From assembly GCA_010909165.1 (NCBI GenBank), contig MU008173.1:496001-560000 (forward strand): 64,000 nt of DNA. Direction: 5' to 3'. Both the position numbers and the translations under genes were made by a program. The number at the start of each line of letters is the position of its first letter. Position 1 is the first letter of the stretch. This DNA is from Anthoceros angustus. Lineage: Eukaryota > Plantae > Anthocerotophyta. A model generated the notes under the pieces. That model searched no databases. It worked only from the letters and a program-made list of their open reading frames with translations, and was not told the DNA's origin. Shown in pieces: positions 14,801-44,900 of this stretch.

Positions 14801-17464
14801 CTCTTTCTCCTTGTTTCTTCGTGAAAAGAACCCAATACTCCCGCAAACGCCGGGTCGAAAAGGGAACACCACCTCGCTGCCTCCTCCGCTTGCCACCGGG
14901 CGCCTTGCCTCGCCTCCTCTCCTCCTCCTCCTCCTCCTCTCCTCCTTCACTCTCACTTCCCCACCTCGGTTCCTCCTTCACTGCCTCCACTTCACCGGAC
15001 GGTCGAAAAGGGAACACCACCTCGCCACCGTGGTGGGCGGCTACCTCCCCACTGCAGCCCGCCCGACGCCTCGCCCACGCGGCCGGGTGTGTCCGTCTCT
15101 CGCTTGCGCCCGACCGCCGCGCTCTCCGCCACTAGGGTTGTAAACTCCCGGTCTCAGACGCCCCGCTTCTTCGCCACCGTGGTGGAACTGGCTACCTCCC
15201 CGCTTGATCTGCCAATCGGCGGTGTAGGCACCCCTAACATATATAGACACTTTCTTATTTCTAAAATCACCAAAACCCAAGGACTCTATCTCCGACCTAC
15301 CTATCCGGGGTCGAAAAACCTAAGGTTCAAAAACAAATTATTATCCCAAGGGCCAAGGACCATTCTCGTATAAAAGACCTTACCAGTTGATTCTCAAAGC
15401 ACTCGCTATATCTCTCCGCCACTTCTTGAATTTCTCCAGGCGCCATTGTTTCCATTTGTTCACAGGCTCATGAGACCTCATCTTGAAGCTCCTCGATTGT
15501 GGCATGCGCCTTGACCGATTCACTAAGGCCTCCTGGGTGGACATGGCCTTTAGCCGCCCCTGCCTTGCATAGGGCCGCCGCATTCCTGCCTCAAGGCCCT
15601 CGCCACCTTGTTCTCGCCTGTGCTCCAACTTCTCCTTGAGCAACTTTTCCTGGCTTACACACCAGTGTGAGAGCCATGGCCTCGAGGAGATCACTGCGTC
15701 GAGCCATGGCGAAGTCAAGGCCTGATTCGAATTGCCCCTGCCCATTCCTTCCACAACAATGACGCGGTGTCACTGCCTCCACTTCACCGGACGGTCGGTG
15801 AAATGTCGAGTTCTGCGGACTTGGCTATCGAACTAACCCCTCTTCTTCTAGGGGTTGGTTTGCCACAATCTCCTCATCCGCCCCAATCTCTCCTAGCGGC
15901 GACTCCTCCCGACCCGAGAGGGGCACAACTTGTCGCTTCCCTTTATTTTCTCCTCCTTCACTGCCTCGCCGGATTTCGACTGGTGACCCTAGGTGTGGTG
16001 GGTTCCTCTTCCCTTCCTTCTTCGCCGACCCCTGCTCGCCGCCGCCCGCTTGCCCTTGGAAACCTCCCACCTTCGTCCGAATCTTCTAGGGAAGCGCATT
16101 CCCAACCTGGAATCCTTCCCTAATCTTCCTTACACTCCTCCTCCTCTACCTTGAGTTCTCCCGGTTTCCAGCTATGAAGGCGCATACGCTTCCAACTCCG
16201 CTAGACACCCTAATGCGCGAACACATGAATTAGAAAAGGTGAAATCAAGGAGGGTCGAGGGAAGGGAGAGCAAATTCGCCTCCTCATGTGCTCTTTCAAA
16301 GATCATCCGCCCCAATCGATTTGAGTACCTTTAACCACCTCATGAAGAAAGACCAGGAAGTGGTCTGCCATATGATCCAACTTCCGATTCTGCAGGAAAC
16401 ACAAAATCCACTTGGCTAATCCCACCAGCTGCGCAGACACGAGTTGGCGAGTCACCCATCCATTGTTCACTCTCACTTCCCCAGGCTTCATGAGCGCAGC
16501 CGCTGCAGCTCTCAGGGTCTTCTTTCTCTGGGGGTCAATTACCAAGCTTCCATCCTCTGATGCTTCTCGCCCATACACTGCTCGAAAGAGTCCCAAATCC
16601 CAGTTTTGCGGCCTCTTCCTCGCCTCCTCTTGCAACTTGGTTCTCAATTGCGACTCTTGCACCAATGCCGGGTGAACACCATTTCATCTCCATAAATTCC
16701 ACCCAGCCTCGCACCAGTCGCCTGCCTCACCTTCCAAAGGGTCCATGTTGGGCCACCGCATGGTGGAAATTTCGGCCGCGCTGGGCGCCATCTCTCTTTC
16801 TCCTTGTTCTTCGTGAAAAGAACCCAACACTCCCGCAAACGCCGGTAAAAGGGAACACCACCTCGCTGCCTCCTCCGCTTGCGTTGGCGCTCTTGCCTCG
16901 TCTCTTTTCCTCCTTCACTGCCTCCTCCGCTTCTTGCCCTTGGAAACCTCCCACCTCGGTTCCTCCTTCCGCGACGGTGGCGGTTTAGCCACCGTGGTGG
17001 GCGGCTACCTCCCACCTCGGTTCCTCCTTCACTGCCTCCTCCGCTTGCCCTTGGAAACCTCCACCTCGCGGTCTTTGGGTGTGTCCGCCTCTTGCGCCCG
17101 ACTGCCGCCCACTCCGCCACTAGGGTTGTAAACTCCCCGGTCTCAGACGCCCCTGCTTCTTCGCCACCGTGGTGGAACTGCTACCTCCCCGCTTGATCGC
17201 GCTGTGGTGGTGTAGGCACCCCTAACATATATAGACACTTTCTTATTTCTAAAATCACCAAAACCTATCTCCGACCTACCTATCCGGGGTCGAAAAACCT
17301 AAGGTTCAAAAACAAATTATTATCCCAAGGGCCAAGGACCATTCTCGTATAAAAGACCTTACCCAGCGATTCTCAAAGCACTGCTATACAAACACTCTTA
17401 AAACAAAAAAAAATCGTGCATCCCTACACTTCAGAGAGGGCTAGAGTATATGTGGTCTTCCACA
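11820..17464 (-). repeat. 5' LTR (5.6 kb, including a ~2-kb internal tandem duplication)
   Basis: Bounded by a perfect 7-bp inverted repeat, TGTGGAA (11820-11826) and TTCCACA (17458-17464); PBS follows on the minus strand. Confidence 0.8.
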
Positions 17465-20215: not shown

Positions 20216-20693
20216 TATATCCGATTACGCAGCGGTCATAACATATATCAGCAATTCCTTGCAGCCTGATTCTAAACTTTCACACAAGAGGAACTTGATG
20301 AACATCAAGCTCGTCCTTTAACAGTAGGAACAATAATTACACCAACTTCAGATAGCACAGTAGAGTACTGAAATGTCTATAGTGTTCCACATGAAACTTA
20401 TGGAGAAAATCTAAAACATAGTAATATGTCAAAAAAGCTATAGTAATCGACGGGTATATCCGATTGCGCAGCGGTCATAACATATATCAGTAATTCCTTG
20501 GAGCCTGATTCTAAACTTTCACACAAGAGGAACTTGATGAACATCAAGCTCGTCCTTTAACAGTAGGAACAATAATTACACCAACTTCAGATAGCACAGT
20601 AGAGTACTGAAATGTCTATAGTGTTCCATATGAAACTTATGGAGAAAATCTAAAACATATTAATATGTCAAAAAAGCTATAGTAATCGACGGG
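20216..20693. repeat. 239-bp tandem duplication
   Basis: 20216-20454 and 20455-20693 differ at only about 5 positions. Confidence 0.92.
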
Positions 20694-21200: not shown

Positions 21201-21600
21201 GTGGCACGAGGTAAAAACTTGCATTCGCATGAGCACTTCCTCTATGGACAACCAAACAAAACAAATCTCTGCAAATATAGGTGCAAACCAATGCGCAAAA
21301 AAGAATAGGTGAGAAAAGCTCGCCCCTCGTGGCACAAATACGAGAACATCACGCAAATCCCTCACACATTTCTCTCGAAGTCATAGCTTTGACCTCCTCA
21401 CAATACCCTTGTATTGCATATGTAAAGACAAGCTACGTTCTGAGCCTGTCCTCTATGAAGAGTTTATGTATACTAGCCGTTGACATCGGCATATTCCTAA
21501 GTTATCTTATTGGTATCAACATGTGCCACGGAGCCTAATACTTGCCACAACTATTGACTTGAAGTAAGAATCCGTCCAGGTTTGCCTTGCTACCTAACAA

Positions 21601-21770
21601 AACACTATTGTTAGAAATTCTATTTTGTGAGAACTGTCACTAACCAAAAGCTAGCTAACGAAATACTATTGTGAGAAACTCAATTTTGTGAGAACTGTCA
21701 CTAACCAAAGCTAGTTAATGAAACACTGTTGTGAGAAACTCAATTTTGTGAGAACTGTCACTAACCAAAA
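21601..21770. repeat. ~60-bp tandem repeat x3
   Basis: ATTTTGTGAGAACTGTCACTAACCAAA three times at ~60-bp period. Confidence 0.9.
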
Positions 21771-22198: not shown

Positions 22199-23947
22199 AT
22201 GATGGTCTCCATCCGGGAACTGGAGAAATCGATGGGTACACGCGAGGAGGAGGAGGCGGAGGCAGGCAAGGAGGAAAGGGAGCAGGGAAGGAGGAAAAGG
22301 AAGAGCAAAAGAGGCTCTAAGGAATCAGGGGGCGGCGAGCAACAGCCAGGGCCAGAGGTTGCCAATGGAGGGACCAATAGTAAGAAGAGGAAGTTGGAGG
22401 CAGAGGGCTTGGATGCACAGACAGTGAGCGTGGAAGGGATTATGAGTAGCACTGCATTTGATACCCTCCCCCTTTCTGAGCCGACGAAGAAGGCAATTCG
22501 TGATACGGGGTTCTCACACATGACTGAGATTCAGTCTAGGTCGATCCCGGAGTTGCTGAAAGGTCGGGATGTGTTAGGTGCAGCTAGGACGGGTTCGGGC
22601 AAAACCCTATCCTTTTTGATACCGGCAGCTGAGCTGCTGTATCATGGCCAATTCATGCCTCGGAATGGGACTGGTGTGATCATCATTTCTCCAACACGGG
22701 AGCTGTCAATGCAGATTTATGGAGTTGCCACGGACTTGCTCAAGTACCACAGCCAAACACATGGAATTGTGATGGGAGGATCTAACCGTCGAACCGAAGC
22801 GGAGAAGCTCAGCAAGGGTGTTAATCTACTTGTAGCTACTCCTGGTCGCCTGCTGGATCATCTTCAGAACACCAAGGGCTTTCTGTACAAGAATCTCAAG
22901 TGCCTCATCATTGACGAGGCTGACAGGATTCTGGAAATCGGATTTGAGGAGGATATGAAGCAGATCATAAAACTTCTCCCGAAGGATAGACAAACTGTTC
23001 TTTTCTCTGCTACTCAGACACACAAGGTTGAGGATCTTGCCCGTGTTTCTTTCAAGAACAAGCCTATTTATATCGGAGTTGATGATGGACGCTCGAAGGC
23101 AACCGTTGAAGGACTGGAACAGGGCTACTGTGTGGTGTCAAGCTCCAAGCGTTTTCTTCTCCTTTTCACCTTTCTGAAGATGAATCTGAAGAAGAAGGTG
23201 ATGGTCTTCTTTTCTTCCTGTAATTCTGTGAAGCATCACCACGATCTTCTGAATTACATTGATATTCCATGTCTCGACATTCATGGCAAGCAGAAACAGC
23301 AGAAGAGAACCACTACGTATTTTGAGTTCTGCAATGCCGAGAAGGGAATTCTTCTTTGTACTGATGTTGCTGCTCGTGGCCTGGATATTCCGGCTGTTGA
23401 CTGGATCATACAGTATGATCCACCTGACGATCCCAAGGAGTATATTCATAGAGTTGGCAGGACAGCTAGAGGCGAAGGTTCCAGAGGCAAAGCTCTGTTG
23501 TTTTTGATACCTGAAGAGCTGGGGTTTTTGAAGTATCTGAAGGGGGCGAAGGTTCCACTCAACGAGTACGACTTTCCAGCCAACAAGCTGTCCAACGTGC
23601 AGTCAGAGCTGGAAAAGTTGGTGGGTAAAAACTTTTACCTCCACCAATCAGCACGAGATGCGTACAGATCTTATCTGCTTGCCTACAACTCTCATTCTCT
23701 GAAGGATATATTCAACGTCCATCGATTAAACTTGCAGGAAGTTGCTGCGTCCTTTGGTTTCAGTTGTCCACCCAAGGTCAACCTGAATCTGGATAGCAAT
23801 GCTGCTAAGTTCAGGAAGACGGGGCATAATGGTGAGGTCGGAAGGAAAAGTAAGCCCGGAGCGAGGGGCAGCGGTCACGGATTTAGTGCCAGCAACCCTT
23901 ATGGGAAGCGATCAGAAAATGACAAACGGCAGTTCTCTCGGATTTGA
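22199..23947 (+). CDS. HAS1: DEAD-box RNA helicase, HAS1/DDX18 family, intronless
   Basis: 582-aa ORF with [41 protein letters not shown] and [12 protein letters not shown]. Start may be 22202 or 22232. Confidence 0.95.
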
Positions 23948-24331: not shown

Positions 24332-27073
24332 CTACTTTAACAGAGACTCAATCGCTTCAAAGTATAACGGAGCCATCTCGGGGGATTGGGTCTTCACGGC
24401 ACACTTCACAGACAGATGCCCCACAACTGCAGTCAGCTCTACTAGGAAGGGAATGTTCGAAGGCACCTTCCCAGAAAGATAAAGGACATCTTGGCTAGTC
24501 TCCTTCAGCTGACGGCGTGCAATGAAGAATAGGTTGGAGCTTGCTAGTTTCTCCAGGGTAGCCTCCACATTTGTGATGATGGCATTTGGCAGCTCCTTAG
24601 AGACTTCATGGGAATCAGGAAGGGATTTCCAAGTCTCCAAAAACACGCTCCTCTCCATCCGACCTTCCTCAACAAAAAGTGCTTGCAAGGGAATCTTATC
24701 AGCAAAGTACCATACCGGTTGCTGATTGTTCTTTACCGCTACCTGTAAAACAGAGTTTGGTGAACCAGCTGCCACATTCTGGAACAGCACCATTGGCAAA
24801 AGGACGCTTGATGAGCTGCCAGGCTGAAGCAAAGGCACTTGAAGAGGACCTGCTGCAGCAAGACCAAAAGTGTTCTTATTAAATTGGATCATGAACCCAT
24901 CTAGTGGAAGTTGTGAGCTGTTCTCAAAATGTAGACTGTAGAAGATCTGTCCATCACGACGAACAAGTTTCCCACTGATCTGCAAACCCTGCCCGGCAGC
25001 TGCTGTCAAGAGCACTGGCAGTTGTGGCACTGGAGCAGCTGAGGTTGGCTGAGAAACTGGCACTAGCGCGCCATCCAAGCCCATCAAATCACCCAGCAAA
25101 TCTGCAACAGGAGCAGGTGGAACACTTGATTTCGGCTGCTGCGACGAACCCACAGAAGACGTGCTTGGTCTTGGTGGTTGCGGAGCATAAGCTGAAGGCC
25201 CAGCTGGTGGCACTGGGGCAGGCGTATCCGGTATGGGTGCTGAAGACTCCGATGGACCTGCATCCTGGTTGTCAAGGTAGCCCTCCTCTTCATCTGTTGG
25301 CTGGATGGCTGGTCGGGTGCGACTGACAAATGCATCTGGAGGCTTGTGATACACAGAGGCCAATGTTGCGATGTTTGCAAGCAGCTCATCAAGAAGTGAA
25401 GAATCCAAAGTATTTGAGTCATCACTCAAGGTCGGCTTCTCAGCCAAGACAACATCCTTTGCAGCTTCAGGATCTGTGGACAACAAGCGCCAGTAGACAT
25501 ATGCACGATCCCGAAGATCTGGATTATCTGTTTCTTGAGTTGCATTGTTAAGTACCACCTGAATCATCTGTTGAGGACCTTCCGTGGGCTTCTTGAGAAA
25601 CAGCTTCACAGCAGCAGTGAGAAGCTGCAGCTGCACCATGGCCGGCTCTTCTGGAAAGCTTTCTAGGAAGCTCTCTAGCAGCTCATCAGCATTGTCTATC
25701 CGCTCTGCATATTCCCCAATTATCCAGATCATTGATGCCTTTGCCTCCGGTTCGTCAAGAGTGTCCAAGCTCTCACACAGGGTAGCAATAATAGATTCGT
25801 ACATGTTTGGGTATCGACGAAAAATATCCTTGATGACAATGATAGCCTCCTGCACCACATAGTTGACCTTGATTTTGATGAGTTCAAGCAAAACATTGAT
25901 GCAGCGCTCTGCAGCTCTCTCCAGCTTAATGGCACAGCGGCCAATAGCCCTGACAGCTTTGCGGACAAAGTCAACATCGACTTCTGTTGCATACTCCTTA
26001 AACTCCAACAGGACCTGGTCAATGTTCCTGTCAGAGGCCAGCTTGATCATAATCTCCAGCTTTTCCATCTTCACATAGATGGGGTCGTTATATTTGCAGA
26101 AAAACACCTTGATCTCGTGCGCCAGAATGCTCGGTCTCCGCTGCACAATGAGATTGATATTCCGCAAAGCCACGTACTGTATCTCCGGCTCAGCGGAAAT
26201 GAGCGTCACCAGAGGCGGAGCCATTTTCTTGCACAAATTCCTGGCCACATCTGGACTGGTAATGAGTTCCATCTGCTGCAATATCACCTTCACCGCAGAC
26301 AGCACGACGGCACAATTAGCATGTTGCAGGCGAGGGGTCACCCGCTCCACGATGTTCTCGGCATCACGAGCATCATTCGCCTTGTACCTCGACAGGGCAT
26401 CCAAAATGAACACCTGACCCCATTCCGTGCACTCGTTGAGCGCAGCCAAGAGCTTGAACAGCGTGTTGTTGGTGATCTCAAATATGACCTTGCTGCTGCT
26501 CTCTTGTATCTCTGCCAACGCCGCTACCGCATTCGCCACAACCATGGGATTGCTGTCCGATATCATCTCCTTCAAGGCATCCAAAAAGCCTCTATCCTCC
26601 ACCAGCTCCGCATTGATGTCATACAGTTTGGCCACGCACACAGCTGCCGTTTTCCGCACGTAGGGATCGTCGTCCTTGATGCACCTCTGCAACGGATCGC
26701 ACAGATACTCAGTTATCTTGTCCACCCTGATGCACCCCATGGTCCTCACAGCTAGAGCCCGGATCAACGGATTCGGATCCTGCGAGTCCTTCACAAAGGT
26801 GTTGACAGCCAGAATAGCCAGATCCGGCTGGCTCTTGGCGTAGTTGATCAAATACAGATACACCAGCTTCTTCAACTCCAGATTGTCCGTCTGCATGCAG
26901 TTCACCACATCCGTGAACAACATGGACACATCCTTGCCCACCGTCATTGCCGCAATCACCTTCTTCACCGCATCCTTCTTCTTGTCCTTGTACTGCGAGT
27001 TGAGCTCCTCTTTCAGCTCGTGGATCTCACCCTTCTTGGTGGTGGTGAAGTACTTGGAGTCATGGCCGCTCAT
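24332..27073 (-). CDS. AP-1/AP-2 adaptor complex beta subunit (beta-adaptin), intronless
   Basis: ATG at 27073 gives [25 protein letters not shown]; adaptin N domain, Pro/Ser-rich hinge, appendage; 913 aa in one ORF. Confidence 0.96.
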
Positions 27074-27817
27074 GCTGTGCCGACAGCCCGCAGGCGCAGA
27101 TCCGACACAAGGCACGAAGGCGGCAAATGGAAGCAAATAAGCTCCTCGGGGCCCTACGATCTCCCCTGCCTCTCCCCCGGTCCCCTTGGGTTTTTGACTG
27201 GGCGCTGTCTTACATGCGTTTCAATCCCCTCCCTCTGTCAACGACCCTCTCGCCGTTCACAGACCTAAACTTTCTCCTTCCTGCTCTGCACCGTATCAAA
27301 ATTCGCTTTTATCGTCTTTCCAGTTTGTGGGCATTGATCGTCATCCACCATCCACCGGGAATGAGCCACTTTCTGTTAGACGCGCACCGACCTTCCAAAT
27401 GACGTGATCGTACATGTATCAAACTTGCGGAATTTGGCCTTTCGATTATCATGCACTGCATTGGACCGTCATTTTGATGCACAAGTGTGTGACATGACAG
27501 CAAGGACGATGCAGGTCTTCAGGATGCCTGGGAAGCCGCACATGTGCAGCATGAATCTGACATGGAAGACGAAAACAACGACATCGTTGCTGCATTTGCG
27601 CTTTGCTCCAGGATTGAATGAGGCTGCATCTCAAGTTGCCACCATATCCTCGAGACATGTGCCACTGACAGCATCAGCCCCTAGACCCATGCAGCTGCTT
27701 GGCATCCAGCAAAGCTCCGACCCTGGCGCATGCTTGAAGGTTGCAAATGTGGGTTCTACCACATAGCTGCATTTTTTACTCCACTCTGTGTGTCATCCGG
27801 AGACTTGACTGCCTGCC

Positions 27818-29926
27818 ATGACCGTCTTCTGCAGCGTTGGAAATGGGTTCATGGAAAGATCTCCCGCTGGCCTGACTTCAAGGGGCCCACAGTTGGTGCA
27901 CAAGCAAGTCGGGAGGTGCAGTAGCAGCTGCGTCAGGACGAGCTTGGTGAAGCAGGGTTGCTGGGTGGATGGTTCTGATACCCACAGGAGCAGGCCTGCA
28001 AGGTGGCAAGATAGAGGGGGCTGCGTGACGGCTGAGACTGTGAGCAAGCTGTGTGAGGATGGCCATCTCGCTCAGGCTGTTGAGGCTTTGGAGATTCTGG
28101 TGCACACAGGCCGATGGGTTTCCAAGTCTCTGTTTTATACTCTTGTGAGGACATGTGCAGGCAAGAAGGATCTTGTGCTGGGTAGCCGCGTGCATGTTTT
28201 GGCTGTGAGGAAGGGGTACGGGTCGGACACGTTCTTGTGCAACCACATCCTGCGGATGTATGCTTCTCATGGCAGGCTGCAGGATGCCATGCAGCTGCTC
28301 GAGGGGGTTGCCAGACCGGATGCCTTCTCCTGGTCTGCCATCATCTCTGCGCATGTCAGGCATGGTCGGGACAGGCAGGCCATAGAACTGTATCAGCGGA
28401 TGCGCAGGTCGGATGTAAAGCCAGATGGGCATGTGTTTGCGGCAGCCCTTCAGGCTTGTGCAAGGGGAGAAGACTTGAAAGCTGGGCAGCAGGTGCATGC
28501 TGATGTGCTGGCCAGCGGCGTCGAGCCTGATGTGTTTGTCTGCAGTTGTTTGGTGGACATGTACGCGAAGTGTGGCAGCTTGGAAGATGCTCAGAGAGTG
28601 TTTGATGGACTGGCCGTGAAAAATGTGGTCACTTGGACGGCCATGATAGCAGGATATGCTCAGAAGGGCATGGGGCACCGAGCTCTGCGTCTGTACAGTG
28701 CTATGCGAGAGGAAGGCATGGCTGTGCCCGATTCTGTGACATTTGTATGCCTCCTGCAGGCATGTGCTTGTGGGGGCACGTTGGCGTTACACGTGGGGAA
28801 GCAGCTTCATATGCAGATCAGAGAAGGGGGACATGAAGGTGAAGTGTTTGTGGTCAACAGTTTGGTGAGTATGTATGCAAAGTGTGGAAGGTTGGAAGAC
28901 GCTCGAAGGCTGTTTGATGGAGCTGGGCAAAGAAATTTGGCGTCGTGGAATGCCATGATAGCTGCATACTCCCAGCAGGGTATGGGCCAGGAAGCCCTTC
29001 GTCTGTACAGTGCCATGCTAGAGGACGGCACGACTACACCCGATTCCATCACATTTGTGTGCCTCCTGCAGGCATGTGCAAATGTGGCAGCTCTGTATCT
29101 GGGAAGGCAGCTGCACGGACAGATCGTGCAACAGGGGCTTCAGGCAGAGGTGCTTGTAGCTGGCAGTTTAATCAACATGTATGGAAAGTGTGGGAGCATG
29201 GTTGATGCACAACAGGTGTTTGATGAAATGCCCGAAAGGAATGTTGTTGCCTGGAGTGCGCTGATTGCAGGCTACACATGCCAAGGAGAGAGTGAAGTGG
29301 TCTTTGATTTGGTCCAGAGGATGAGGGAGGATGGCATAAAGCCAGACGGCGTCACATTCCTCAGCGTGTTGACAGTGTGCAGCCATGTAGGTCAAGTGAC
29401 GAAGGGACGGGAATACTTTGAGGCAATGCACAGACACCATGGCATTACTCCCACTGTCGACCACTACACGTGCATTGTGGATCTCCTTGGTCGTGCAGGG
29501 CAAGTGGATGAGGCAATAGCTTTGGTAAGGTCAATGCCAGTTTCACCTAATGCTGCAGTTTGGCACACCTTGTTGGGTGCTTGTCGAACATGGAGTAATG
29601 TGGAGGTGGGACTCCATGCTTTTCATGAAGCCGTGAAGCTAGACAAGGAAGATGCCACAGCTTATGCCATGATGTGGAACATATACACCAGTGCCGAGAT
29701 GTGGGAGCAGGCACAGGAGATGCAGGGAAGGAGAAAAGGACTCAGGTCATGGAAGCAGCCAGGGCAGAGCTGGTGGACAGACACGGAGGGACTGGTGCAT
29801 AGTTTTTTGGTTGGGGATGAGAAGCATCCCCAGAGCCCAGCAAGGGTGTATGCGCAGCTCGTTGCTCAGGATCTGGTGATAGCCCGTCATGCCTCTGAGA
29901 GGAGACCGTCTTACCAGCTGACCTGA
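27818..29926 (+). CDS. PLS-class pentatricopeptide repeat protein with E1-E2-E+ and no DYW deaminase; candidate organellar RNA-editing factor; intronless
   Basis: About 14 alternating L/S/P motifs ending P2-L2-S2 (HYTCIVDLLGRAG), E1 (VWHTLLGACR), E2, and PG box KQPGQSWWTD...HSFLVGDEKHPQ. Exact start uncertain. Confidence 0.93.
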   Translation: MTVFCSVGNGFMERSPAGLTSRGPQLVHKQVGRCSSSCVRTSLVKQGCWVDGSDTHRSRPARWQDRGGCVTAETVSKLCEDGHLAQAVEALEILVHTGRWVSKSLFYTLVRTCAGKKDLVLGSRVHVLAVRKGYGSDTFLCNHILRMYASHGRLQDAMQLLEGVARPDAFSWSAIISAHVRHGRDRQAIELYQRMRRSDVKPDGHVFAAALQACARGEDLKAGQQVHADVLASGVEPDVFVCSCLVDMYAKCGSLEDAQRVFDGLAVKNVVTWTAMIAGYAQKGMGHRALRLYSAMREEGMAVPDSVTFVCLLQACACGGTLALHVGKQLHMQIREGGHEGEVFVVNSLVSMYAKCGRLEDARRLFDGAGQRNLASWNAMIAAYSQQGMGQEALRLYSAMLEDGTTTPDSITFVCLLQACANVAALYLGRQLHGQIVQQGLQAEVLVAGSLINMYGKCGSMVDAQQVFDEMPERNVVAWSALIAGYTCQGESEVVFDLVQRMREDGIKPDGVTFLSVLTVCSHVGQVTKGREYFEAMHRHHGITPTVDHYTCIVDLLGRAGQVDEAIALVRSMPVSPNAAVWHTLLGACRTWSNVEVGLHAFHEAVKLDKEDATAYAMMWNIYTSAEMWEQAQEMQGRRKGLRSWKQPGQSWWTDTEGLVHSFLVGDEKHPQSPARVYAQLVAQDLVIARHASERRPSYQLT

Positions 29927-30210
29927 CCGTCAACAGACACAAAAAGACAGTGGTTATAAGCAGCAGGTTGACAAACATGTAGGCAGGTTGGAAGCTGCTC
30001 AGCGAAGCACTCTGAAACGGTTGTCGTCGAAAGTAAAACTGGGGGCATGCAGCCGAAGGGCCCTCCTGGCATGCTCTTCGGGTATGTTACCACATCGTTT
30101 GCAAGGAAGGCTGTCGAGCAATGCTTTAGGTCTTTCATCCTGCGACGCTTGGAATACAGGCAGTCAGAGGTACCAGAGCTCAGCCCAGGGGCCAACATTT
30201 TATCATTGTC

Positions 30211-30296
30211 CTGCTGCCCAGTTTTTGAGCCTGCTGTTCTTGCAAAAGCCTGAGAAAAACTTTGCAAGAACTGCGGACTCAAAAATTGGGCAGCAG
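30211..30296 (+). ncRNA. Long stem-loop, pre-miRNA-like (candidate only)
   Basis: 36-position stem: 32 Watson-Crick pairs, 2 G:U and 2 symmetric mismatches; loop ~12-14 nt. Confidence 0.4.
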
Positions 30297-30688
30297 TACT
30301 GTCGAAATGGCCTACAAAAACTTGTGAGCGGGCCTTGGATATTTCGTCCAACAATTAATTCCATCTTTTTCCCGTTCAAATTGATGGTCCAATGCAGTGA
30401 ATGATCAAAAGGCCAAATTCCGCAAGTTCGGTACCGACCACGGACTCTTATAGTCGTCAGACTAGCTCAGCGCAGGATTATACCCATACCTCCAGTCACA
30501 CCTCGCCAAAGCCAAGGGCCTTGAAGCTACCCTGAAGCCCCCCGACCTATGGCGTCCGCAATGCTGGCAGCTTGGCCAGCTACTTTGATGGCAGGTTAGC
30601 CCAGCACCCAACCTCCCATTGCTCATTCTCGGGTCTTTGTTCCCTTCGTGATTTTGTCTTCTCTTCTGGTGCACCTTGAGTCTGAGGG

Positions 30689-32769
<2,081 letters not shown>

Positions 32770-32974: not shown

Positions 32975-35900
32975 CTAATCAGCCAACTGGCAGAGGCACG
33001 CAACCCCTTGCAGTACCCAAAAATCAGGTGTGGTTTTTGGATCAACTACAAGGCTCACTAACAGAATGAAATTGGAAGAAGCTCCCGTTGTTGTCAAAAC
33101 TCCAGCTCTCACATGTGTCTTGTAGAGTGGACACTGATATTCTTCATCGGGAGGCTTATAGTTCACAATAGGAATGAAGTGAACAACTGGCAACCTTGAG
33201 TACATCTCACCTGAAAAGCAAGCAGTGGTACAACGTGTTTCACACAACTCCGAAACAATTTACCACGGCCAGAGTATCACGTTGGCTGGCTTACCGGGAT
33301 TGGCTTCAGCCAAGCACTTGCGCCTTCGATCCCATCTGGCTCCGTCAACGTAGAGCCCACTAATGAACAGGCCATCCTCTGGAGCGAGATCGACATCTTC
33401 GTCGTTCTCCATAGGCAGGACCTTGAAACCGAAATTCAGAGTATCTATGGGTATCTTATATTTCCGGGCATGGTTCTGCAATGCACCTGTCATAAAACCC
33501 TGAAATCGAAGTAAGGGAACTTATTAGATGTCGCTTCTTGAGAATGGAGCTGCTGATTTTTGGTAGCAAGCTAGCCTTCTCACCTGAGGGAAAAAGAAGC
33601 CAGGCAACCAAAAACTCTTGGGCTCTCCTTCTTTGATCCATTTGGCGAAGAACTGCATTCGCCTATGAAAATCCTTCACCCACGACGAAAGGGGTTTTCA
33701 ATGATGGATACGCCACTGCGGTCCATAATGCAGGTAATTGGTTGTTCAGGAAGTTGTGGAACATGCTCTCCAAATCTGCTGACATGACCACCAGCCCCTT
33801 GATTGCTTTCTGGAGTTCAACAAGGGTAATCCGGATCCTATTGAGCAGCCGGTTGAACCTTTCCGATTCCTGCACTCCACAGAACAGTCATACATCTGCA
33901 AGTATGAGGGAACCTCTTTTGTTCATGAGGGAACGTCCTCGGAGCTGTACCTGAAAAAGCACAGTTGTCAAAGAGCTTACTGCTCCACTTGGCCCTATCA
34001 CGTGTGCCTGCTTTGATTCTTCGGGTCTCAGAGGGGCAGGAAGGTCTGCGAGGATCTTAGCTGCTAGTTCAGCTACAATCTCGTCTGAGCTCTTACCCCC
34101 CTTTGATGAGCTCATTCGAGGCTGCATACTCAGGACTGTGTTGATGATCTTCTGCGTTTCTTGAAGCTGAAATGTGAGATTTGCATTCTCATGCATCCCA
34201 AAAACATCAGGAGCTTCTGAGGTGGGGAGAGTCTTGATATAGTCCACATATGATGAATAGGGGCCTTCTGGAGGGGATACATATATCCCAGAGGAAGTGA
34301 AAGGATGCAGATCTTTCAAAACCTCGACGTCATAGAAATGTCGTAGGGTGCTCATGAGGCATCTCCGATCCAGATCATCTGTAACTCTTCCACCATAATT
34401 GATTTCACCTGGGTTTTCACTGCTGTGAGTACATTCTGATGTGTTTCCGATTGTGAATTGAAGTTGGATACTCTTATGTGATAAGCTTGGATGGATAGCA
34501 TGCTTGATCCTCTCTCTTGCTTACCTGTGACATACAGGAGAGCTGGCCAAGGAATTTCTGGCTGCTCCTCCAGAAACATGTGAAGAGTTTGAAGGGCACA
34601 CTCGAGATCACTACTGTTGAAGTCGTATTTCACATTCCATCCTAAAGGCCCGTATTTTCGCCTTTCCTGGATGACTGAGATGACACAAGATTTTGATATC
34701 AGGACAACAAGACGACCTTCAAAGAAGCACATGAGCGTAAAGACGATGGGCAGAAAAGAGTCATCCAAAAATCTACCTGCATGGAAAAAAGAAATGCTGA
34801 AGACCAGTTTCTTCCAAGTTGTCAGCTTGGTGCATTCCTCCAGAAACGAGACAGAAATATTCGCATATGATTGCATCAGGTTAGCTCGCACCCCTTTTGG
34901 TGGCTCGTTAGTTATCTTAATGCCATTCTGCAATATTGGAGCGGAGTGGTCAATCTTTCCAGGGTTAGAATGATCTGTACACAGACCTTCCAACCTAAAG
35001 TTCAGCAGTTTCAGCAAGACATGGGGCATGATGTGTGAATGTATGAGGTTCAACAGCTCATACCTGTAGAACTGGGATCGGAAAGTCACTCGAAGGGAAC
35101 GACGTCAACCAAAGACGAAATTCTGGATGGATATCTGCGGCCTCAGGAATAAATTTCTCGATAATCCTTTCCATGGTCGGCATCCATGATCTTGCTAGAT
35201 GACAGTTTTGAAGACAGACCCAGTCCCCTGTCTTCCTTGATTTGGAGACAAGGGTCTCTGCTATGGGCCCTTGACCCTGACCCAATGAGATCATATGCAG
35301 CTTCTCTCCAGGTTTCTTGTCCACTTTCTCTCCAAATCTTTGGAGCATTCCTGTTGGATCAGCTCCTGTTGTCAGAATGAATATTACGGGAGTAGTGTTC
35401 GTTGTGTCCTTGAAGACTTCTTCGAGCTGCAGAGGAGAGCTTCCAATGAAGTGGGGTCCTAGTTTGAACTTGATGAACTCCTCACATCCAAAAATAAACT
35501 TCTCCTCTCTCATTATCCTGAGCACTATCAACCGCTGGAATGGATCAACAGCATCCTGCCACTTAGAGGGGAGAGCCATAAGATGAGGCTCCGGAGATCT
35601 AAAGAATTCCTTCCAAGCACTAGGATGTTGGGCAAAATCTGCAGCAAGTCCTGTAAAAGTTTCAGGTGTAAGCTCCTCAAGGGCACAAATATGATTCCAA
35701 ATATGGGTGGTTATCCACTCTGGAGCTGGATTTGGGGGTCTATCATCCGGTGCCGGCATGCCCGCTGTCCCCACAAGGAAGAAACCCCATTCAGATTGCC
35801 GGATCTCACCAGCTGCCCTTAGTATAGCTGAGCACATTAGAAAAGCAAAAGTGATTTTATGCTGCTCGAAAAGGCCTCTGCTGACACTCGAGTACAGGAA

Positions 35901-38900
35901 CTCAGTTATACACACTATCATGTTATTTAGCCTGGTTGCCAAATCATCTGATCGCTCACTTATGTCAATGCAGTGATTGAAAAGTTGGCTGAAGAAAGTT
36001 AGGGAATACTGATACATAGGATCCACGAGAGCCAGGTCTGAAATGACAAAATACAAAATGGACCCACGATATGCAACAATCCTGTACAACTCTCGAGCTG
36101 CTGTTATCTCTTTCTCAGTTATTTCTGCCTGCTTCACTCTTGCTGAGATGACAGTTGAGGTAGTTTTAGAGTTGTTCAGTGTGTTGATCAGCACTTCATC
36201 ATCCAAAATGTTGCCTTCACTTTCTTTCAGAAGTTTCAAAATCTTGTCTTCCAGATCCTTGAGTTGCTTCTTGTCACTACTTATGCTCACCACAAGCCTA
36301 TCATTTTGTTCTTCAAGATCAGCTCTCTCTTTCCTGACGACATCCCCCAAAAGCTGGTCCTCTAGGCCCTTGGCCGTTACAGTGAAGTTAACTAAAGTCA
36401 CCTTGATGCAAACCTCTGGTAGGTAATGTGGATTCGACATCTTACTTGTCATATATAATTTGAAGTTCATGTCATAATCAACATCCGTGTCACCTAGACG
36501 TATCAGCCAACGGCCCTTCTTTTCAAATACCTGCACAAGGTAAGAAAAAGAATGAATGATGTGACAACTAAACCGGACGCAATATACACGTATGCATCGG
36601 TTGATGGATGTTCTAACCTGTTTCTGAAGAATGGGTTCCAAAGCAGGGTCCAGAGCATCCCCAATCTCTTCCAAGAGAACTGGATTTCCAATTCGAATGC
36701 TGCTCTCCAGCGTCCTCAGAAGGTTACCATCTGTAAGTCTGACTACCCGTAGGCCATTTTTGGATTCCATGGCCTTGATCCAACTATTTGCCTGTCCTTG
36801 GGGGTCTATCATCAAAGGCCACCTCTTTCCACGGGTAACCAGGATGCCATTGTCTACAGATACGTCATCAACTGGGAGGCCCCATATGCTCCACTCACGG
36901 ACCTCGACTGGTGATGCCAAGATTCCCCTCAAGCTACAATTATCTGAAACAGGAATGGCCTGTGCCTAAAATTTTGAAGTTTGACACCTCGGTTATTAGA
37001 AATGAACTCCTAATGTACCGTGGCAGCAACTGTGATACAGAGGTGATGGAATAGCAGAGAAGTTTCAAGAAAACTTTACCTTACACTCTGCAATCCAACC
37101 ATCCAAGAGGACTTTGCGATATGGTCCAGAGAAAGCACCGTAGTATGATATACATGCAGCACACAGGAAAACATCTCCCACAAGCAACAATTTGTGTTCA
37201 CCAATCTCCTTTGCCGTTGATTTCCACCGTACCTGTTGCACGTCAAGTGGGGCTCTTTATTCTGGCATTGTCTTGGAGGACTTCATTTGGAAGGTTGTGA
37301 GACATTCAACTGTCACGCAAAAAATGGGACAAGACGCACGGATTCATCTCCAAGGGCTGAGGTCAGTTTTCCGGCCCGAATAAGACGATTTTCAGTGAGT
37401 TGAGCTTGCTGCTGAAGACTGCGTTGATCAGCTTCCACCACCTCCAGGTTCTTCTTCAGTTTCTCAACCTTTTCCTCCACTGCCCGAAGTTGCTCCTGCT
37501 TCGTAGCAAGATTTTCTGATGCTGCTTTTAAGGCCGCTTCTGCCTTTCTCAATACCTGTCCCATCCCCAAATGTATGATACCACTGCAGTCAAATAACAA
37601 ACTGCAAGAGGGAGAGCACGAAGGACGAATTGAGATGACAGTCCTGCAATACCCATAGTCTCTTTCTAACGCATGATTTCATTAGACAGCTTCACATGTA
37701 TCGAAATTGAGGTAAACAGTGAGCAAATAGGAACCTCTTTCTTAGGTGCAACAATTTTGTTGACATTTGCGTACACATCCATGGCTCGGACCCACATACA
37801 GAGACTGGTGGCAGCAGCACTCTGCTTTTGAACGATCTCTGGCAAAAAACTGGGATCCATAATATACTTTTGAAGCTTCTTCTGAATGAGTGGAGTAATC
37901 GAGTCTTTGTCATAGTCCACAAGACGCTTGATAAACGACACATCTCCCATAATCTGCAAACATATACTGATTCTTAGAATCCAGAACTAACGAGTTGTGA
38001 CTGTCACAACTCCACATAAAGTAAAATGCCAGCTACCGGACCTTTTTTGCAGCATCCCATTCAGGTTTCTCTCCCAGGAGCACACAAACAGCCTCCATTG
38101 TCATGAGTACGAGGCCTGGTGGAGTCTTGAAAGACTTGACTTCTGTGATATCACTCTTGCTCAATGAATTTAGCGCTTCCACAGCAGCATTCAAAGCAGG
38201 CATGGCTAGTTCAAGGTCTTTAAGTGCATCATCCTTAATAAGCTGTGTGTTGGCTGCCTGCACTTTAACCTGTGCCTCTTCTATTTCTACAGTGTTTTTC
38301 ACCTGCACAGACAGAAGAAGTATGACTGAGCTCACAAGCCCCTAGTTGTCGGCATCATTATTGAATGGCAAAAGCCAGAAGTTGTTGGAGTATACACCTT
38401 CTCAGCAGCTTCTTGGTCGCTTGCAACTTGTGCAACAAGTTTGTCAGTTATCTCTCCTTTCTCTTTCAGTATTGGCTGTAGCTTGCCTAGTTCAATCTGT
38501 ACACAAGGACAAACTGGGTGATCAGTATTCTGTGCAAAAGCTACTACTAGGATTTGTATCCAAGATGGCGAACTGTTGGATCTTGAAATGGAGCGCTCTC
38601 ACAATATTAAACCGTACCTTCATGCTATCAATCAATACGTTGGTTTCCTTTAATTTCTGCAATCCATTCATAAAGCGATCTTGCGCCATGTCCATCTCCT
38701 TTCGCTTTTCTTCTAGCAATTGGATGTATAGATTTACGCAATCAAGATAAGACTTAGGAGTGATGTAATACTTTCTGCGAAGTTCCATGTAGAACTTGTC
38801 AGCAGCCAGGCCAACAGATGTGTGAATTCCTACACACATCTTTGCTATCTTCTTCTTCACCTGCACAGCCCACAAGAACAGTTTCAGTTAAAGATCAAGC

Positions 38901-41900
38901 CAGACTGCAGGCAGGAAGGTTACATAAAGCCTTAGGTTAATGCAGATAAGTGGAGGAACCTGATCGGAACCAAGATCTAGAGGAGCGAGGAAGTGGTTGC
39001 TGACAGAAAGCAAAGCCTCCTCTGGCCATTCATTGAACCAGTCTATCGTGCAACATGATATCAAGGAGGGGAATTGGCGGCACCGGGAACGGAATGCTTC
39101 TCCCACAGGACTCATACAAATGACAACATGCACATTTTCTCTGGCCCTGTTTATGAAGGTTGAGTATAAGACATCTTTAGTTTCTAGGTAACCAAGACTT
39201 CTTGCGTACTCCCGCACTGCCTGCCCTATTCGTTCCTTTTCATCCTGAGCAAACAGTCCTGGTATCTCCCCGGAATTCAACAGGTTATTGATGTCTTCCA
39301 CAAAGCCCTCGTTCACTATTTGAGTATCCGTGAACAGGAATGTAATCGGTTTGCCATCCACTCCTACATGTATCCTCAAAGGTAAGATCAGAAAAAAGTC
39401 AAAAAAGTAGGCGCTGTGGCCACCTAACAATATTTTGAAGTCATAGTATCCTAGAGAAATTTGAGAATTCCGTGACAACTGAAGAAACGTCTCACCTGCA
39501 ACTTGATATACTTTCTTCAAGTCCTCTCTGAATTCGTTGTTGCTATAGCCTTTAGTCAGCTCAATTTGAAAGCATTTGTACTCAGATAGAGAGCAAGCAA
39601 ACCGGGTAAGACTTTGCTTGCCTGACCCACCGACTCCTACTAACATTGCGTTGCCACGTGGTTGACGCAATATTCGCGTGATTCGTGATACATGATCTAT
39701 GGCATCTTTAAAGAACACCAACCTCATTGCTTGTGTGGTGCTCATATTGTAGTCCTCCAAATAGTCTTTGAAAAGTAGAGGAAGTTTTGATGCATCTTGT
39801 ACCTACAAGAGTTTGACCGTACACCTGAGAAATCCGAGCCTTACAGCAGTTTTTAAAGAGATTGCTCAAACATGTCCAGATGGAAAAGCTATTGCTAGAA
39901 TCGAAAACCTGTTCATATCGACGGTCTTCAGCTGCATACCCAGGTCGAAGGTAATCTGCAAACATGATCACAGAATCCTCAAACACCTCTTGGAATGATG
40001 ATATTTCCTCAAAACTCCTTTTCAACAGTTCGTGTAACATGCCCATAAAGTAACGCCTGTCTTCGTCATTAACTAGACGATCATGGAACACCCTCATACA
40101 CTCGTGGATCCATAGTGTCCGAAGTATCCTCTTTGTGTTGCAATCCATTGGCTTCACCATGAGAATTCCCTGAGAAACATTTTTGGGGGATGAGGAGGCC
40201 AGCATGGCACATTCCATGTCGTTGAGGGCTTGTTTTTACGCGTGACCAACCTGAAACACCTTTGAAACATCTCGGAGATTGAAAGTGTAATGCGACTTCG
40301 TCGGGGTGGGAAGAAGTTCTTGACTTATTCTCATATATATCTCAATGCTGCTGTCCACAATAGGCTTCAGAAACGATTTACATTCTTGGGCAAACAACTG
40401 GAGGAATCCCCCTAGAATACCCCCAAATATTGTGCGCAAGGCAGTTTCAGATGGTGGTTGCACGCATATCATGCTAAAATGCCGGAAAAATCGGGCCGTC
40501 ACCTGGCATGAGAGGTGCAAGAAATTTACATCTGAAGGACCTTCAACCTTGCCCAAGGTCCTCTACTATAATACGTAGCAAGGAATCTTTATTCATGTTA
40601 CCATGCACAAACCTCATTACGGCCACCACCAGGGGGTGCACAAGCTGAAATAAGGGTCATGTCCTCAATGTCCTTCCATATAAGCAGCTGTCGATCATAG
40701 AACCCCTTGAAATCTAGAAACTGACGCAGCAGTTCTATTGGGGGTTGTGCGAAGTATTTCTCCCGCTGTGGCATGTTCACATCATCAACAAAGCAAGCAA
40801 TCTTTTTACCAATGGGGGCTCCGTACCGTGTCTTCCGCTTCTTCTCCAGTTTGCTCTCAATGGCTTCCTGCGTGCCAGTTCCAAAGTTAAGAAAGATTGA
40901 ACCAGAGCGCACATAAAATTTCAGATGTTAGATGGCTAACTTTCACTTTTCTGGTCAAGGGGCAACCTGTGTTGCTATACTGGTTGTCTGGGCACTAAAA
41001 TTCAACACAATTGGCATGTATTTGTCTTTCAGCCGAGCTAAAGTGTCCATCACAATTGCACTTTTCCCTACTCCAGAAACACCCTGATATAAAACTGGCC
41101 GGTCAACTTCGAGATTGATTTCCAACAGAAAACTCAACCTCGTTGTATCCAAGGTCGGAACAATGAGGGAAAAGAAGGGAACTCCCACTTTGTACGTGAA
41201 AGCGGGTATTACGTCTTCCCATGGTGACAGAAGCTGATCTTTGAAGTTAACATAGAACTCAAACACTGTGTCCCCGCCTGGAAAAGCTGCCACTGTTTCC
41301 AGCTCACCTCGAAAGAAAGAATCAAACTTGTCAATACTTGGTTGGTCAATGTTGCCCCCAATTGACCATATGTATGCAAAGGCAAACACTCTGTTAACTA
41401 CAGGGGCCATAACTTCGAGTTCAGTTTCTAGGCCTTTAGCCTGCCACACGAGACCCCTGTGAGGCTGAAAAAGGGCTCCCATGTACTGGCAAAGTGATGT
41501 GACGATATTGATATTCATCGATGGTATGTTTTCCTTGCAATTTACTCGTAGAAATTTTAAACCCACATCAACGTAAGTGTCAAAAAGAGTATATATGTGA
41601 GACTCAACAACTGTTGTAAAGGACAGCTCCACTTTCAGCCTTTGCAGCCAGGACTGAACATAGGGCCGCCATCCTAGCTCTTCTGGTGGAACGTACACCA
41701 TTCCACATCGACTTACAGTGGCAGGAGATGCAACTGCTAGATCTGCCACCTCAAAGAGCATCCTCATTGTCATAGGGTTGAGTTTAATACGTTCCCCATT
41801 AGGCAAACAGAGAATACAGTTGTCATCAAGGACAGTGTTCAAGTTCTCAATCCAAATTGCATCTACTGGGCCGTCAAAAACTACCCATTTTCTATCCATA

Positions 41901-44900
41901 GCAGTGTCAGCTACACATTGTCGAATTATTGTACTTCCAAGTCCATCGGTCCACTCATTTGTAAGCAGGTTGTATTCGCCATACAGCTCACCCATCTTGA
42001 TCGACTTTGGATTCAAAACATACGTATGAACTACTTGGAACTGTTGATTCTTATGACCTACCTGGCGAAGCTTTGTCATGGCTGCCCGAAGCATTTGATA
42101 GCAGGTTGTTTTCCCACCTCCTGTTGGCCCTACCAACATAACTCCAAACCTTACATTCATTGTTTCGAAGAGCTGGATGACCTTGATGACATATGCCGAA
42201 ACTGGCTGCAAGCCCACAGCCAAAAGGCATTCCTGTATAGCTACCATTAACTCTCCAAAATCTTGTGCTGGGATTTCAACACCTGGGAAAAGGTCTGCTA
42301 TGATGGCAAGGAAAAGACTAACATCCTGCGCCAGAAACTTTGGCAGGTTACTGTCTTTAAAAGCGCGAATCAACACAACATCTTCATTGAGATCTGGATT
42401 TGCCCTTTTCAGAGCACCAGCCATCACAAGTACAGATTTCACGGCTCTCATCCCAAAATCATAGTGGTCCTGTTGACTTAGTTGCTCACTAGAAAGTTTG
42501 TATAGCTTCACCATTTTCCTTGAGAGTATCTTGGCATTTGCAAAACCCTCTGAAAAGAGCATCACCTCTGCTACCAAAGCGTAATCTGGGATCATCATAG
42601 ATACAGACCTGAAGAGGACCTTAAGATTATCTGGAAGCTCAGTCCGGCCAGCATAGCCCGGATTCATGGTGATAAACACACCACACGTCGGAAGAAGCTT
42701 AATCTCCCTCCCTTCAAACATAAATTTGCTCACCCGACTTTTCAGAGCGTTCTGTATCGTAAGCAGTTGTTGAGCAACCACAGAAAGGACTTCAATATCA
42801 ATCCTATTAAATTCGTCAAAACAAGCCCATGCACCACATTGTGCCAGGCCGGCAAAAAATTTCCCCATGAACTGGTCGCCAATTTACAAGTAGGGTATTA
42901 GAAGACTGTAGTAGATCTGAAGTACATACAGCATATTGTCATCCATTCCTATCATACGTATGATGTAGACTTACTTTCAAAAAATGGGTGACTTGCCCGT
43001 AAATACCTTGTAGTCCAGATTATCACCACAGTTGAAGACCACACACTGAATGCCTAAAGCTTTCCCAAGGTCCTTTGTAGTTTCTGTCTTTCCTGTTCCT
43101 GCAGGACCTGCAGGAGCCCCTCCAAGCTTCATGTGTAGAGCCCCGGTCAAGGTCATGTAGCAACGGTCTGTCAAGGGTGTGATCACAAGGCGGGGCTGAG
43201 CTCCTAGGTATTCATATGCATAGGTGAAACGGGCATTGGTTTGGCGAACGACACAATCGTCCAGCTCATCATCCCAGTAATACCTTAGCTGCATTTGCCA
43301 GCCAAACTCTGTGGACTTGAAAATTTTATCTCTGAGACCAGAGTAGACATCTATCAGAAATTATTCATCAGAAAAAGGACGAACCGTTTTATCACTACTT
43401 CCACTCCATGACAAACTGCATGGTGCAGTAAAAGCCAATGTTGTCACACCTGACCTACCTCACCATGGTTTCAACAATGTCTCTTGCATGGACATCAATA
43501 GTAATCAGGGCAGTCAAAATTTTCCGTTCTAATGCAAGAAGGTCCATTCGCACCAATACGGACAAGTCTGCGAGCTGACTGATACAAAGTTCCCTGAACT
43601 TTACAAGCGCTGCTTCAACATCAGCACTCGCAAGAGCTGCCTCAACTGCATCCGACCAGTACACCTGACTGATCAGCACTACAATTTGTGCAGCGTGCTT
43701 AAGCACCCATTCTTTCCTTGCCCGTTTTGCATAATCAATATGTGCCGCCTTTGACAACCTGCCGCAAAACTGCTGAGAGTTGTTAATGCTTGTCAAGCAG
43801 TGAAGTGTTGATACATGGACGGGAAAGGTGGTAGCAAGACTGGGCAAGCTGAGTGCCTGAGAATCCACAATCACTGTCAAAGTCAGCATACCTTCTCATG
43901 CTAGCCACCATGGCCTGCTCAACAGATGTCAGCCAGTTTTCTACATTGCCTCGAGCCTTGAGATTCTTGCCCAAGGATATCCTCTCCCCTTCCCCAGAAA
44001 CCATCCCGTAGATATCTATACTTTTAGGGTCCTCTCCAAAGTCCAGCCTCCTGATCCCGTCTGCCGTGCACCACAAAGCCTCACCACCATCAACAAACTA
44101 CACATAAATACACCTAGGATGCCTCCAGTGCTTCGTGGAAAGTAGTATAACATAATTACCGAAGCATTTTGACATATGAGGCTGGACTGCTTGGACATTT
44201 CTCGTTTGAGCCAAGATCTCCAATAGCTCATCATTTGATAGAAAATAGAAGCGAGGAAAAGCCATACGCTTTGTCTCCAGGTAGTCCTCCAAATTCTTCT
44301 GAATCTGCTCCAGAGTTTCATTACTTCGTTGGAAAGCTTCCAACCAACCAGGAGTTGTGCCAGCCTGCAACGCATTTGCCCTGAAAACGTGGCCAAGGAT
44401 GGTCAGGAATAAGCACTTGGACAATACTTGTGGCGTTGTCTCGGCAAGCCAGACAACACCGCAACATACCATCCAGCTTACTAGACAGGATTGACAGCTG
44501 CAATGACGTGCCTATCATGTGTACGTTTCATTATGTCTTTGAATTGTTTGTCAACAGCGTTAAAAGCTTTGCTTTCATTGGGCAGTTGTCTCTGGATATC
44601 TGGGGCACTGAAAATACTCTCCAAGTACATCCACTGCTTTTGGCATTCCAGCCACTGATCCAAAACTTTACCAAAATGTTTCAATTGATTTTCCATCTTT
44701 TCCACCTCGTTCCGGATTCCACCGACATATCTGGTTAGAGAGGCCGTTCAAAATGTTCACAAAACCTGAATACGAATTCACAAGCACCATAAGTGTGATG
44801 GTGTTACTTAAGGCTATACCTTGATGAGGTGACTGTATTCATTGTCACCATAGAATCTTCCAGGGCAACTATTACATCATCAACACCTCCCAGCACATAG

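Follow-up and report, generated by a model that had tools for sequence, protein, structure and literature searches.

The PPR family of hornworts numbers more than a thousand genes, and the route of its expansion is an open question. At the locus described here, a PPR gene lies between two inverted repeats of roughly 70 bases each, an arrangement that raises the question of whether the gene was carried to its place by a DNA transposon or whether the repeats arose in some other way. All comparisons of the locus with its surroundings refer to the window, by which we mean the whole 64-kb stretch of DNA that was analysed. The two arms, the gene between them and the genes on either side are as follows.

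27403-27477, no strand assigned: left arm of the inverted repeat, 75 nt, with its perfect core at 27422-27442
30376-30442, no strand assigned: right arm of the inverted repeat, 67 nt, with its perfect core at 30408-30428
27818-29926, plus strand: intact intronless PLS-class PPR gene encoding 702 aa, with an E motif and a PG-box stub and lacking a DYW deaminase
24332-27073, minus strand: left neighbour, a beta-adaptin gene (Pfam Adaptin_N, 2.8e-169), with its N-terminus from the ATG at 27073
30815-32769 (partial extent), plus strand: right neighbour, a spliced gene for an FGGY-family carbohydrate kinase (Pfam FGGY_C in the ORF at 32032-32769)

The arms are reverse complements of one another, with the PPR gene between them, and their similarity is far above chance. 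Sixty of 67 aligned bases are identical (K2P 0.11), so that the arms differ by 7 substitutions and two indels over about 70 nt. The pair is recovered by blastn within the window at E 2e-13, and its local alignment score of 92 compares with 27.4 +/- 6.1 (maximum 57) in 200 shuffles. The 21-nt core matches perfectly between 27422-27442 on the plus strand and 30408-30428 on the minus strand, whereas 0 such matches are expected in shuffles. The preliminary description had placed inverted arms around the gene, with a perfect stretch of 21 bp and, over 56 nt, 4 mismatches and a 3-nt indel; we find the arms in the same place and recover these counts exactly across 27422-27477. The weaker outward extension that it mentioned is also real, consisting of 8 nt with 1 mismatch beyond a 5-nt indel.

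This similarity is discrete, in that no alignment was obtained inside or outside the arms in either orientation. A search for a second, reciprocal inverted duplication and for the decayed remains of a larger palindrome revealed no further similarity between any pair of flank pieces, and no further copies of the arms occur within the 64-kb window. An exact scan of metagenome contigs with the 21-nt core gave no match, in a collection that is irrelevant to copy number in a plant genome. The GC content of the left arm is 43%, compared with 53–57% around it; for the two arms the values are 43–46%, compared with 55–57% in the surrounding intergenic DNA. Several possible identities for the arms were considered and rejected. 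Comparison with the PPR coding sequence revealed no relation that would derive the arms from it. The arms have no Rfam match and contain no tRNA, which argues against a small RNA or a tRNA-derived SINE. They are not a coding exon, since the outer 5-nt indel breaks the frame and a start codon is present in one arm only, and Pfam searches of the arm reading frames returned nothing. One frame is nevertheless open in both arms, the inner indel being 3 nt. An MY..CG match to PPR sequence within the left arm is no better than chance (tblastn E 7.8).

Both neighbours begin close to the arms. The left arm lies 330–404 nt upstream of the beta-adaptin ATG (27073), and the right arm 373–439 nt upstream of the ATG (about 30815) of the exon that carries the FGGY motif, where an N-terminal motif of the type G-x-D-x-G-T-S-G follows in frame. 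The beta-adaptin open frame spans 24332-27136 on the minus strand and is transcribed away from the PPR gene. Without the arm-bounded interval, the start codons of the neighbours would be only about 700 bp apart. Synteny was sought in 80 beta-adaptin loci from metagenomes, and none had similarity to the flanks; these were mostly short, cDNA-like contigs without neighbours. Other repeats occur in the window, copies of an LTR element among them.

The gene within the interval appears to be an ordinary, old and functional member of its family. As had been described, a single-exon PLS-class PPR gene stands between the arms, with an uninterrupted 702-aa ORF that includes an E motif. The protein matches the Pfam models PPR_2 (8.8e-69), PPR (4e-61) and PPR_1 (1.4e-43), and the E_motif model at residues 592–652 (9.9e-8), after which a PG-box-like stretch follows. 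The Eplus_motif model did not match the 702-aa protein. No DYW domain was matched by Pfam in the protein, and the 3′ flank contains no remnant of one further than about 10 codons after the stop. An internal triplet repeat occupies 28528-29225. The exact protein is absent from the protein collection searched, in which neither Anthoceros angustus nor its close kin are represented; in that collection the best fragment match is 53% identical. The best full-length relative (P0048) is 52% identical and has both the leader and the DYW-less end in common with the protein. This degree of divergence, together with the same leader and DYW-less end, indicates that the lineage is old, and thus does not suggest recently amplified cargo. 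Its product is a DYW-less PLS-E PPR protein and a putative editing factor, which would need a deaminase in trans.

The interval is not a clean cassette. Between the arms, each flank of the gene contains a degraded antisense copy of one and the same PPR L-S stretch, and one copy has been folded back into a very stable hairpin.

27554-27757, minus strand: 5′ remnant, a degraded antisense copy of PPR L-S motifs, in the flank inward of the left arm, with a DNA-level core at 27625-27740
30061-30253, minus strand: 3′ remnant, a degraded antisense copy of PPR L-S-P motifs, in the flank inward of the right arm (tblastn E 8e-4)
30196-30309, no strand assigned: fold-back hairpin from the L-motif end of the 3′ remnant, with arms at 30208-30246 and 30261-30299

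The 5′ remnant is detected by tblastn with the PPR gene's own protein (E 6e-5), and 211 matches from 121 PPR queries converge at this single spot. At the DNA level, it aligns to CDS nt 629–773 with 72% identity (score 49, compared with 26.5 +/- 3.3), while Pfam searches of its short ORFs gave no match. The 3′ remnant aligns to CDS nt 632–836 with 68% identity (score 80, compared with 25.6 +/- 3.2), and blastn pairs 30210-30253 with 28450-28493 at 79.5%. A PG-box-like antisense match to the left of the left arm (tblastn E 0.045) was too weak to be accepted. The arms of the hairpin are complementary at 34 of 39 positions, and its RNA fold of -64.5 kcal/mol (z -11.1) was equalled in stability by 0 of 200 shuffles. 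Rfam returned only miRNA-precursor-like matches, all far below threshold, and the best 21-mers from the hairpin have 4 mismatches to the CDS of the PPR gene itself. The divergence between the two halves of this fold-back is roughly similar to that between the inverted arms. The presence of a second fold-back within the interval indicates that inverted copying has occurred at this locus without any transposon signature.

What, then, produced the arms? A transposon origin would make them the TIRs of an old, non-autonomous Pack-type DNA transposon, carrying a whole PPR gene together with PPR fragments, that inserted into a short bidirectional promoter between the beta-adaptin and FGGY kinase genes. 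The anatomy has much in common with such an element: paired inverted ends of 67–75 nt with sharp outer borders, arms that are AT-richer than their surroundings, a total length of 3.04 kb that is typical of Pack elements, and an interior of host-gene material with some fragments in opposite orientation. Cut-and-paste elements often insert close to gene 5′ ends, and here the interval parts two start codons that would otherwise be only about 700 bp from each other. Nonetheless, a TSD of 5–11 bp is absent at and near the arm ends, although one of 8–10 bp should remain visible at about 10% divergence. The lack of a TSD at the arm ends had been noted from the start, and a sliding-border search bears it out: no direct repeat of at least 5 nt stands in register with the arm ends, and only 2 nt (GA/GA) agree at the ends of the alignment, a TSD of 2–4 bp being too short for statistical judgement. 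A single candidate emerged, a 9-mer with 1 mismatch, but it is out of register, one copy being 10 nt beyond the left arm and the other within the right arm, and it was set aside as a chance match (probability about 0.2). The arm ends, in direct reading, start with CGTG(A/G)TCG, without a CACTA, TA or TWA terminus, and match none of the typical superfamily ends compared (CACTA, TA-flanked Tc1/mariner, TWA-flanked PIF, and hAT- or MULE-type starts). The window contains neither a further copy nor a transposase, and no transposase-like ORF was found near the arms. Pack elements usually carry fragments rather than intact genes, but the cargo here would be an intact 2.1-kb gene, and every captured piece is related to PPR sequence, which is what local rearrangement of PPR on PPR would produce. 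The inverted repeat itself is thus the sole evidence for TIR-bounded cargo, and we consider that origin unlikely, leaning against it because a rearrangement scar accounts for the same anatomy without the features that are absent. It is slightly less probable still that the interval is a Pack-type cut-and-paste element with a complete, working PLS-class editing-factor gene as its cargo; if it were, DNA transposons would have helped to spread hornwort editing factors, beside retroposition and tandem duplication.

Two further explanations dispense with transposition of the gene. The arms could be separate fragments or copies of a single dispersed repeat family, a MITE or part of some larger element, which landed on the two sides of the gene in opposite orientations and might later have let the segment flip by ectopic recombination. 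Short inverted pairs in plant genomes commonly arise in this way, the window does contain other repeats, including the LTR-element copies, and the AT-richness of the arms would fit; but neither arm has a TSD or terminal inverted ends of its own, 67–75 nt is very short for a complete MITE, a third copy is absent from the 64 kb, and there is no Rfam or tRNA-like match to point to a SINE. We regard this origin as doubtful, though with a real chance of being correct. A retained function seems highly improbable, whether the arms are taken as a cis-regulatory module common to the 5′ regions of both neighbours or as sequences that pair across a long PPR transcript, one at its 5′ end and the other at its 3′ end. 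The perfect conservation of the 21-nt core and the 3-nt length of the inner indel are in its favour, as is the position of each arm, which lies 330–440 nt upstream of the ATG of a neighbour and is oriented alike with respect to it. This geometry, however, is automatic for any inverted pair between divergent genes and so counts against the functional reading, while arms of about 70 nt that differ by 7 substitutions and two indels reveal no clear constraint, and no known RNA family matches. We tentatively favour the view that the arms are the scar of a small rearrangement, an inverted micro-duplication of local DNA that was formerly unique, and would give it somewhat less than an even chance. 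Such a scar would consist of non-repetitive sequence duplicated in inverted orientation at the borders of the segment, without a TSD; the inverted pair and the lack of a TSD are observed, and within the 64-kb window the arms are non-repetitive. In size, identity and the missing TSD, the arms fit the inverted duplications known from staggered-break inversions and from fold-back repair. On the other side, the AT-richness of the arms is slightly more in keeping with transposon ends than with host DNA that was copied, and the reciprocal duplication from the other breakpoint is absent.

Under the rearrangement model, the event would have involved the roughly 3-kb segment that bears the PPR gene. 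The most probable event would be an inversion via a staggered break at one border, followed by fill-in and end joining; fold-back or template-switch repair could have left the same scar. We infer inversion or fold-back as the origin of the arms, one of which would be the original intergenic stretch and the other a copy at the far border. The arms would need no function of their own, although as inverted homology they could permit the segment to flip again.

Comparison with known systems places the locus between several precedents. Like Pack-MULEs and other Pack-type elements, it has inverted ends around about 3 kb of host-gene material near gene 5′ ends. Unlike Pack-MULEs, it has no TSD, of 9–11 bp or otherwise, and its arms are shorter than typical MULE TIRs; unlike Pack-type elements in general, it would carry a whole gene that appears functional instead of fragments, and the window contains no family members and no autonomous partner. 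Young miRNA and siRNA hairpins arise by inverted duplication of target genes, as with the PPR-targeting MIR161. The hairpin in the 3′ flank is similarly an inverted duplication of a coding piece, from a PPR L motif, with a very stable fold. It differs in that it is known here from sequence alone, its 21-mers are 4 mismatches away from the CDS and its Rfam matches are far below threshold.

A close parallel for the arms comes from Drosophila, in which duplications at staggered-break inversions span 46 bp to 1.9 kb with an identity of 88 +/- 5.4%, and in 12 of 18 cases the duplication involved only one breakpoint (Ranz et al. 2007, PMC1885836). The arms, at 67–75 nt and about 90% aligned identity, fall inside this range, and as in those cases a segment is bracketed, without a TSD, by a short stretch that appears non-repetitive and is present as two inverted copies. 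Those inversions are large, however, and their orientation was established by species comparison, whereas the present segment is about 3 kb and was read in one hornwort genome. Transposed plant genes with flanking repeats have also been described, with stress on direct repeats, movement demonstrated through a sister species, and an Arabidopsis Pack-MULE with long TIRs and a 10-bp TSD among the examples (Woodhouse et al. 2010, PMC2869330). In common with those genes, a single member of a mobile-prone family is bracketed here by short repeats, and the two antisense PPR remnants resemble their gene-derived flanking repeats in forming an old direct pair around the gene. In contrast, the well-preserved repeat here is inverted, and only one genome was read.

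If DNA transposons moved whole editing-factor genes, this would be a new route of PPR family expansion. The present locus shows only a PPR gene in rearrangement-prone surroundings, with an inverted micro-duplication, antisense debris and a fold-back hairpin. Such surroundings are useful background for understanding turnover in the family but come as no surprise. Of greater potential importance is the PPR-derived hairpin, should it give rise to small RNAs directed at PPR transcripts.

On local evidence, a transposon is the less likely explanation for the pair of inverted arms that bracket the intronless PPR gene. This gene lies in a stretch of closely packed genes:

22199-23947, + strand: DEAD-box helicase, 582 aa
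24332-27136, - strand: beta-adaptin, single 934-aa ORF; the true ATG at 27073 gives 24332-27073, 913 codons
27818-29926, + strand: PPR gene
start ~30815, + strand: FGGY-family kinase
33888-42868, - strand: axonemal-type dynein heavy chain with long exons (AAA_6, AAA_7, AAA_8, AAA_9 and D6 domains)

The best protein matches come from seedless plants, and such a dynein is expected where sperm are flagellate; both agree with a hornwort. Beta-adaptin, the DEAD-box helicase and, elsewhere in the window, most of alpha-COP (59942-62875, + strand, 977-aa ORF) each occupy an uninterrupted single ORF, unusually few introns for housekeeping genes of a land plant. The window also has three related copies of ~2 kb (900-2990, 13200-15400 and 15400-17400; blocks 65-100% identical, spacings ~12.3 kb and ~2.0 kb), which resemble the LTRs of a Gypsy-type element with one additional LTR in tandem. 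There are also three tandem duplications, the latter two at 18-22 kb, where GC is low (37-43%):

7762-8821: 506-nt units, nearly identical
20216-20693: two 239-nt units, 98% identical
21586-21766: three 60-nt units

The PPR gene itself bears out the preliminary description. It is intronless and encodes 702 aa, with strong PPR family matches, an E motif and, after it, a PG-box stub. No DYW domain was found in the protein, nor any remnant of one downstream of the gene. Across the whole length the product is 52% identical to P0048, a Logan-derived protein that shares its unusual N-terminal leader, has one extra PLS triplet and, likewise without a DYW domain, stops at the same position past the PG box. 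Both the lineage and its deaminase-less state are therefore old. The protein collection, fragments included, held no closer relative, and the species itself is evidently absent from it. As a DYW-less PLS-E protein, the product would presumably be an RNA site-recognition factor needing a deaminase in trans, as predicted from its family.

A repeat search found the arms as a pair of adjacent inverted blocks (27416-27449 with 30401-30434, and 27448-27477 with 30376-30405), which gapped local alignment joined and extended to 27403-27477 versus 30376-30442. Identity is 60/67 aligned positions, and two indels (5 and 3 nt) separate the copies; the alignment scores 92 against 27.4 +/- 6.1 in shuffles, and blastn inside the window gives E 2e-13. 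Over the 21-nt core the two copies agree perfectly, and no shuffle matches it. Every earlier count for the arms holds (21 perfect positions; over 56 nt, 4 mismatches and one 3-nt indel; and an outer 8-mer). The arms do not resemble the PPR coding sequence (CDS), and similarity between the two flanks is restricted to them.

Several features suit the earlier proposal that the gene is the cargo of a Pack-type element: inverted ends, a length like that of such elements, an interior of host-gene material and arms slightly richer in AT than their surroundings; the original spacer between the neighbours' start codons would then have been ~700 bp. We nevertheless consider this unlikely. The lack of a target-site duplication (TSD), already remarked on, was borne out: no direct repeat of 3-11 nt stands in register outside the arm ends, even with each border slid by ~20 nt, and only 2 nt agree at the ends of the alignment. 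At ~10% divergence a TSD of 8-10 bp should still be visible. One 9-mer with 1 mismatch was rejected: its left copy is 10 nt beyond the left arm, its right copy falls within the right arm, and ~0.2 such matches are expected by chance in this search. The arms start CGTG(A/G)TCG, to our knowledge the terminus of no known transposon superfamily. Nor is there any sign of a family: the 64-kb window contains no further copy of either arm, whether up to 3 mismatches are allowed or blastn is run at a word size of 7 nt, and no transposase-like ORF. The 21-nt core was not found in a metagenome contig collection, which is unlikely to contain this plant; the beta-adaptin loci in metagenomes sit on short contigs that lack introns, resemble cDNA and carry no neighbour genes. 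Cargo status would also require an intact 2.1-kb gene as load, which is unusual. An Arabidopsis Pack-MULE among transposed genes has long TIRs and a 10-bp TSD (PMC2869330). It is somewhat less doubtful that the arms are two fragments of a dispersed repeat, although neither arm carries its own termini or duplication, and an entire element of 70 nt would be very short. That the arms serve a function seems highly improbable: each does sit 330-440 nt upstream of a neighbour's ATG, with the same orientation relative to that gene, but this geometry is inherent to any inverted pair between divergent genes. Known kinds cover the phenomenon under every reading.

We tentatively favor a model in which the arms are the scar of a staggered-break inversion or of fold-back/template-switch repair. 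An inversion with a staggered break at one border, followed by fill-in and end joining, leaves a short, discrete, TSD-less inverted duplication around a segment of a few kb, the anatomy seen here; repair by fold-back or template switching would look no different. Duplications at Drosophila inversion breakpoints span 46 bp to 1.9 kb with an average identity of 88 +/- 5%, and derive from one breakpoint only in 12/18 cases (PMC1885836). Since no outgroup shows the segment ever in the opposite orientation, we infer such a scar rather than observe it.

Finally, the interval between the arms is not a clean cassette:

27554-27757, - strand: decayed antisense PPR L-S motif pair in the 5' flank (left arm to start codon), E 6e-5 with the gene's own protein
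30061-30253, - strand: second decayed antisense PPR remnant, in the 3' flank, aligning to CDS nt 632-836
30196-30309: near-perfect hairpin, stem ~45 bp, 270 nt past the PPR stop codon

At the 5' remnant, 121 PPR queries gave 211 hits, all stacked at one spot, and its DNA (27625-27740) aligns to CDS nt 629-773 with a score of 49 versus 26.5 +/- 3.3 and 72% identity; the 3' remnant scores 80 versus 25.6 +/- 3.2, with 68% identity. Both best match one CDS stretch (nt ~630-836), forming an old direct pair around the gene, and no other flank piece shows any CDS likeness. The pair may go back to a long target duplication of old date or be the leftovers of an older minus-strand PPR gene. The hairpin (arms 30208-30246 and 30261-30299, 34/39 complementary) formed later by back-copying of the L-motif end of the 3' remnant, which left a coding fragment of a PPR L motif duplicated in inverted orientation. 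It shows that inverted copying took place at this locus without transposon features, in keeping with the favored model. The locus therefore has two layers: an older one, the antisense PPR debris flanking the gene (divergence from the CDS ~30%), and a younger one of two inverted duplications, namely the arms and the hairpin, at roughly 10-19%. The fold of 30190-30315 reaches -64.5 kcal/mol (z -11), a stability that no shuffle equals; Rfam returned only sub-threshold miRNA-precursor matches for the hairpin, and its best 21-mers match the gene's own CDS, at 28471-28499, with 4 mismatches. This PPR-derived hairpin behind the gene is the most interesting by-product of the analysis, as a candidate source of small RNAs against PPR transcripts.
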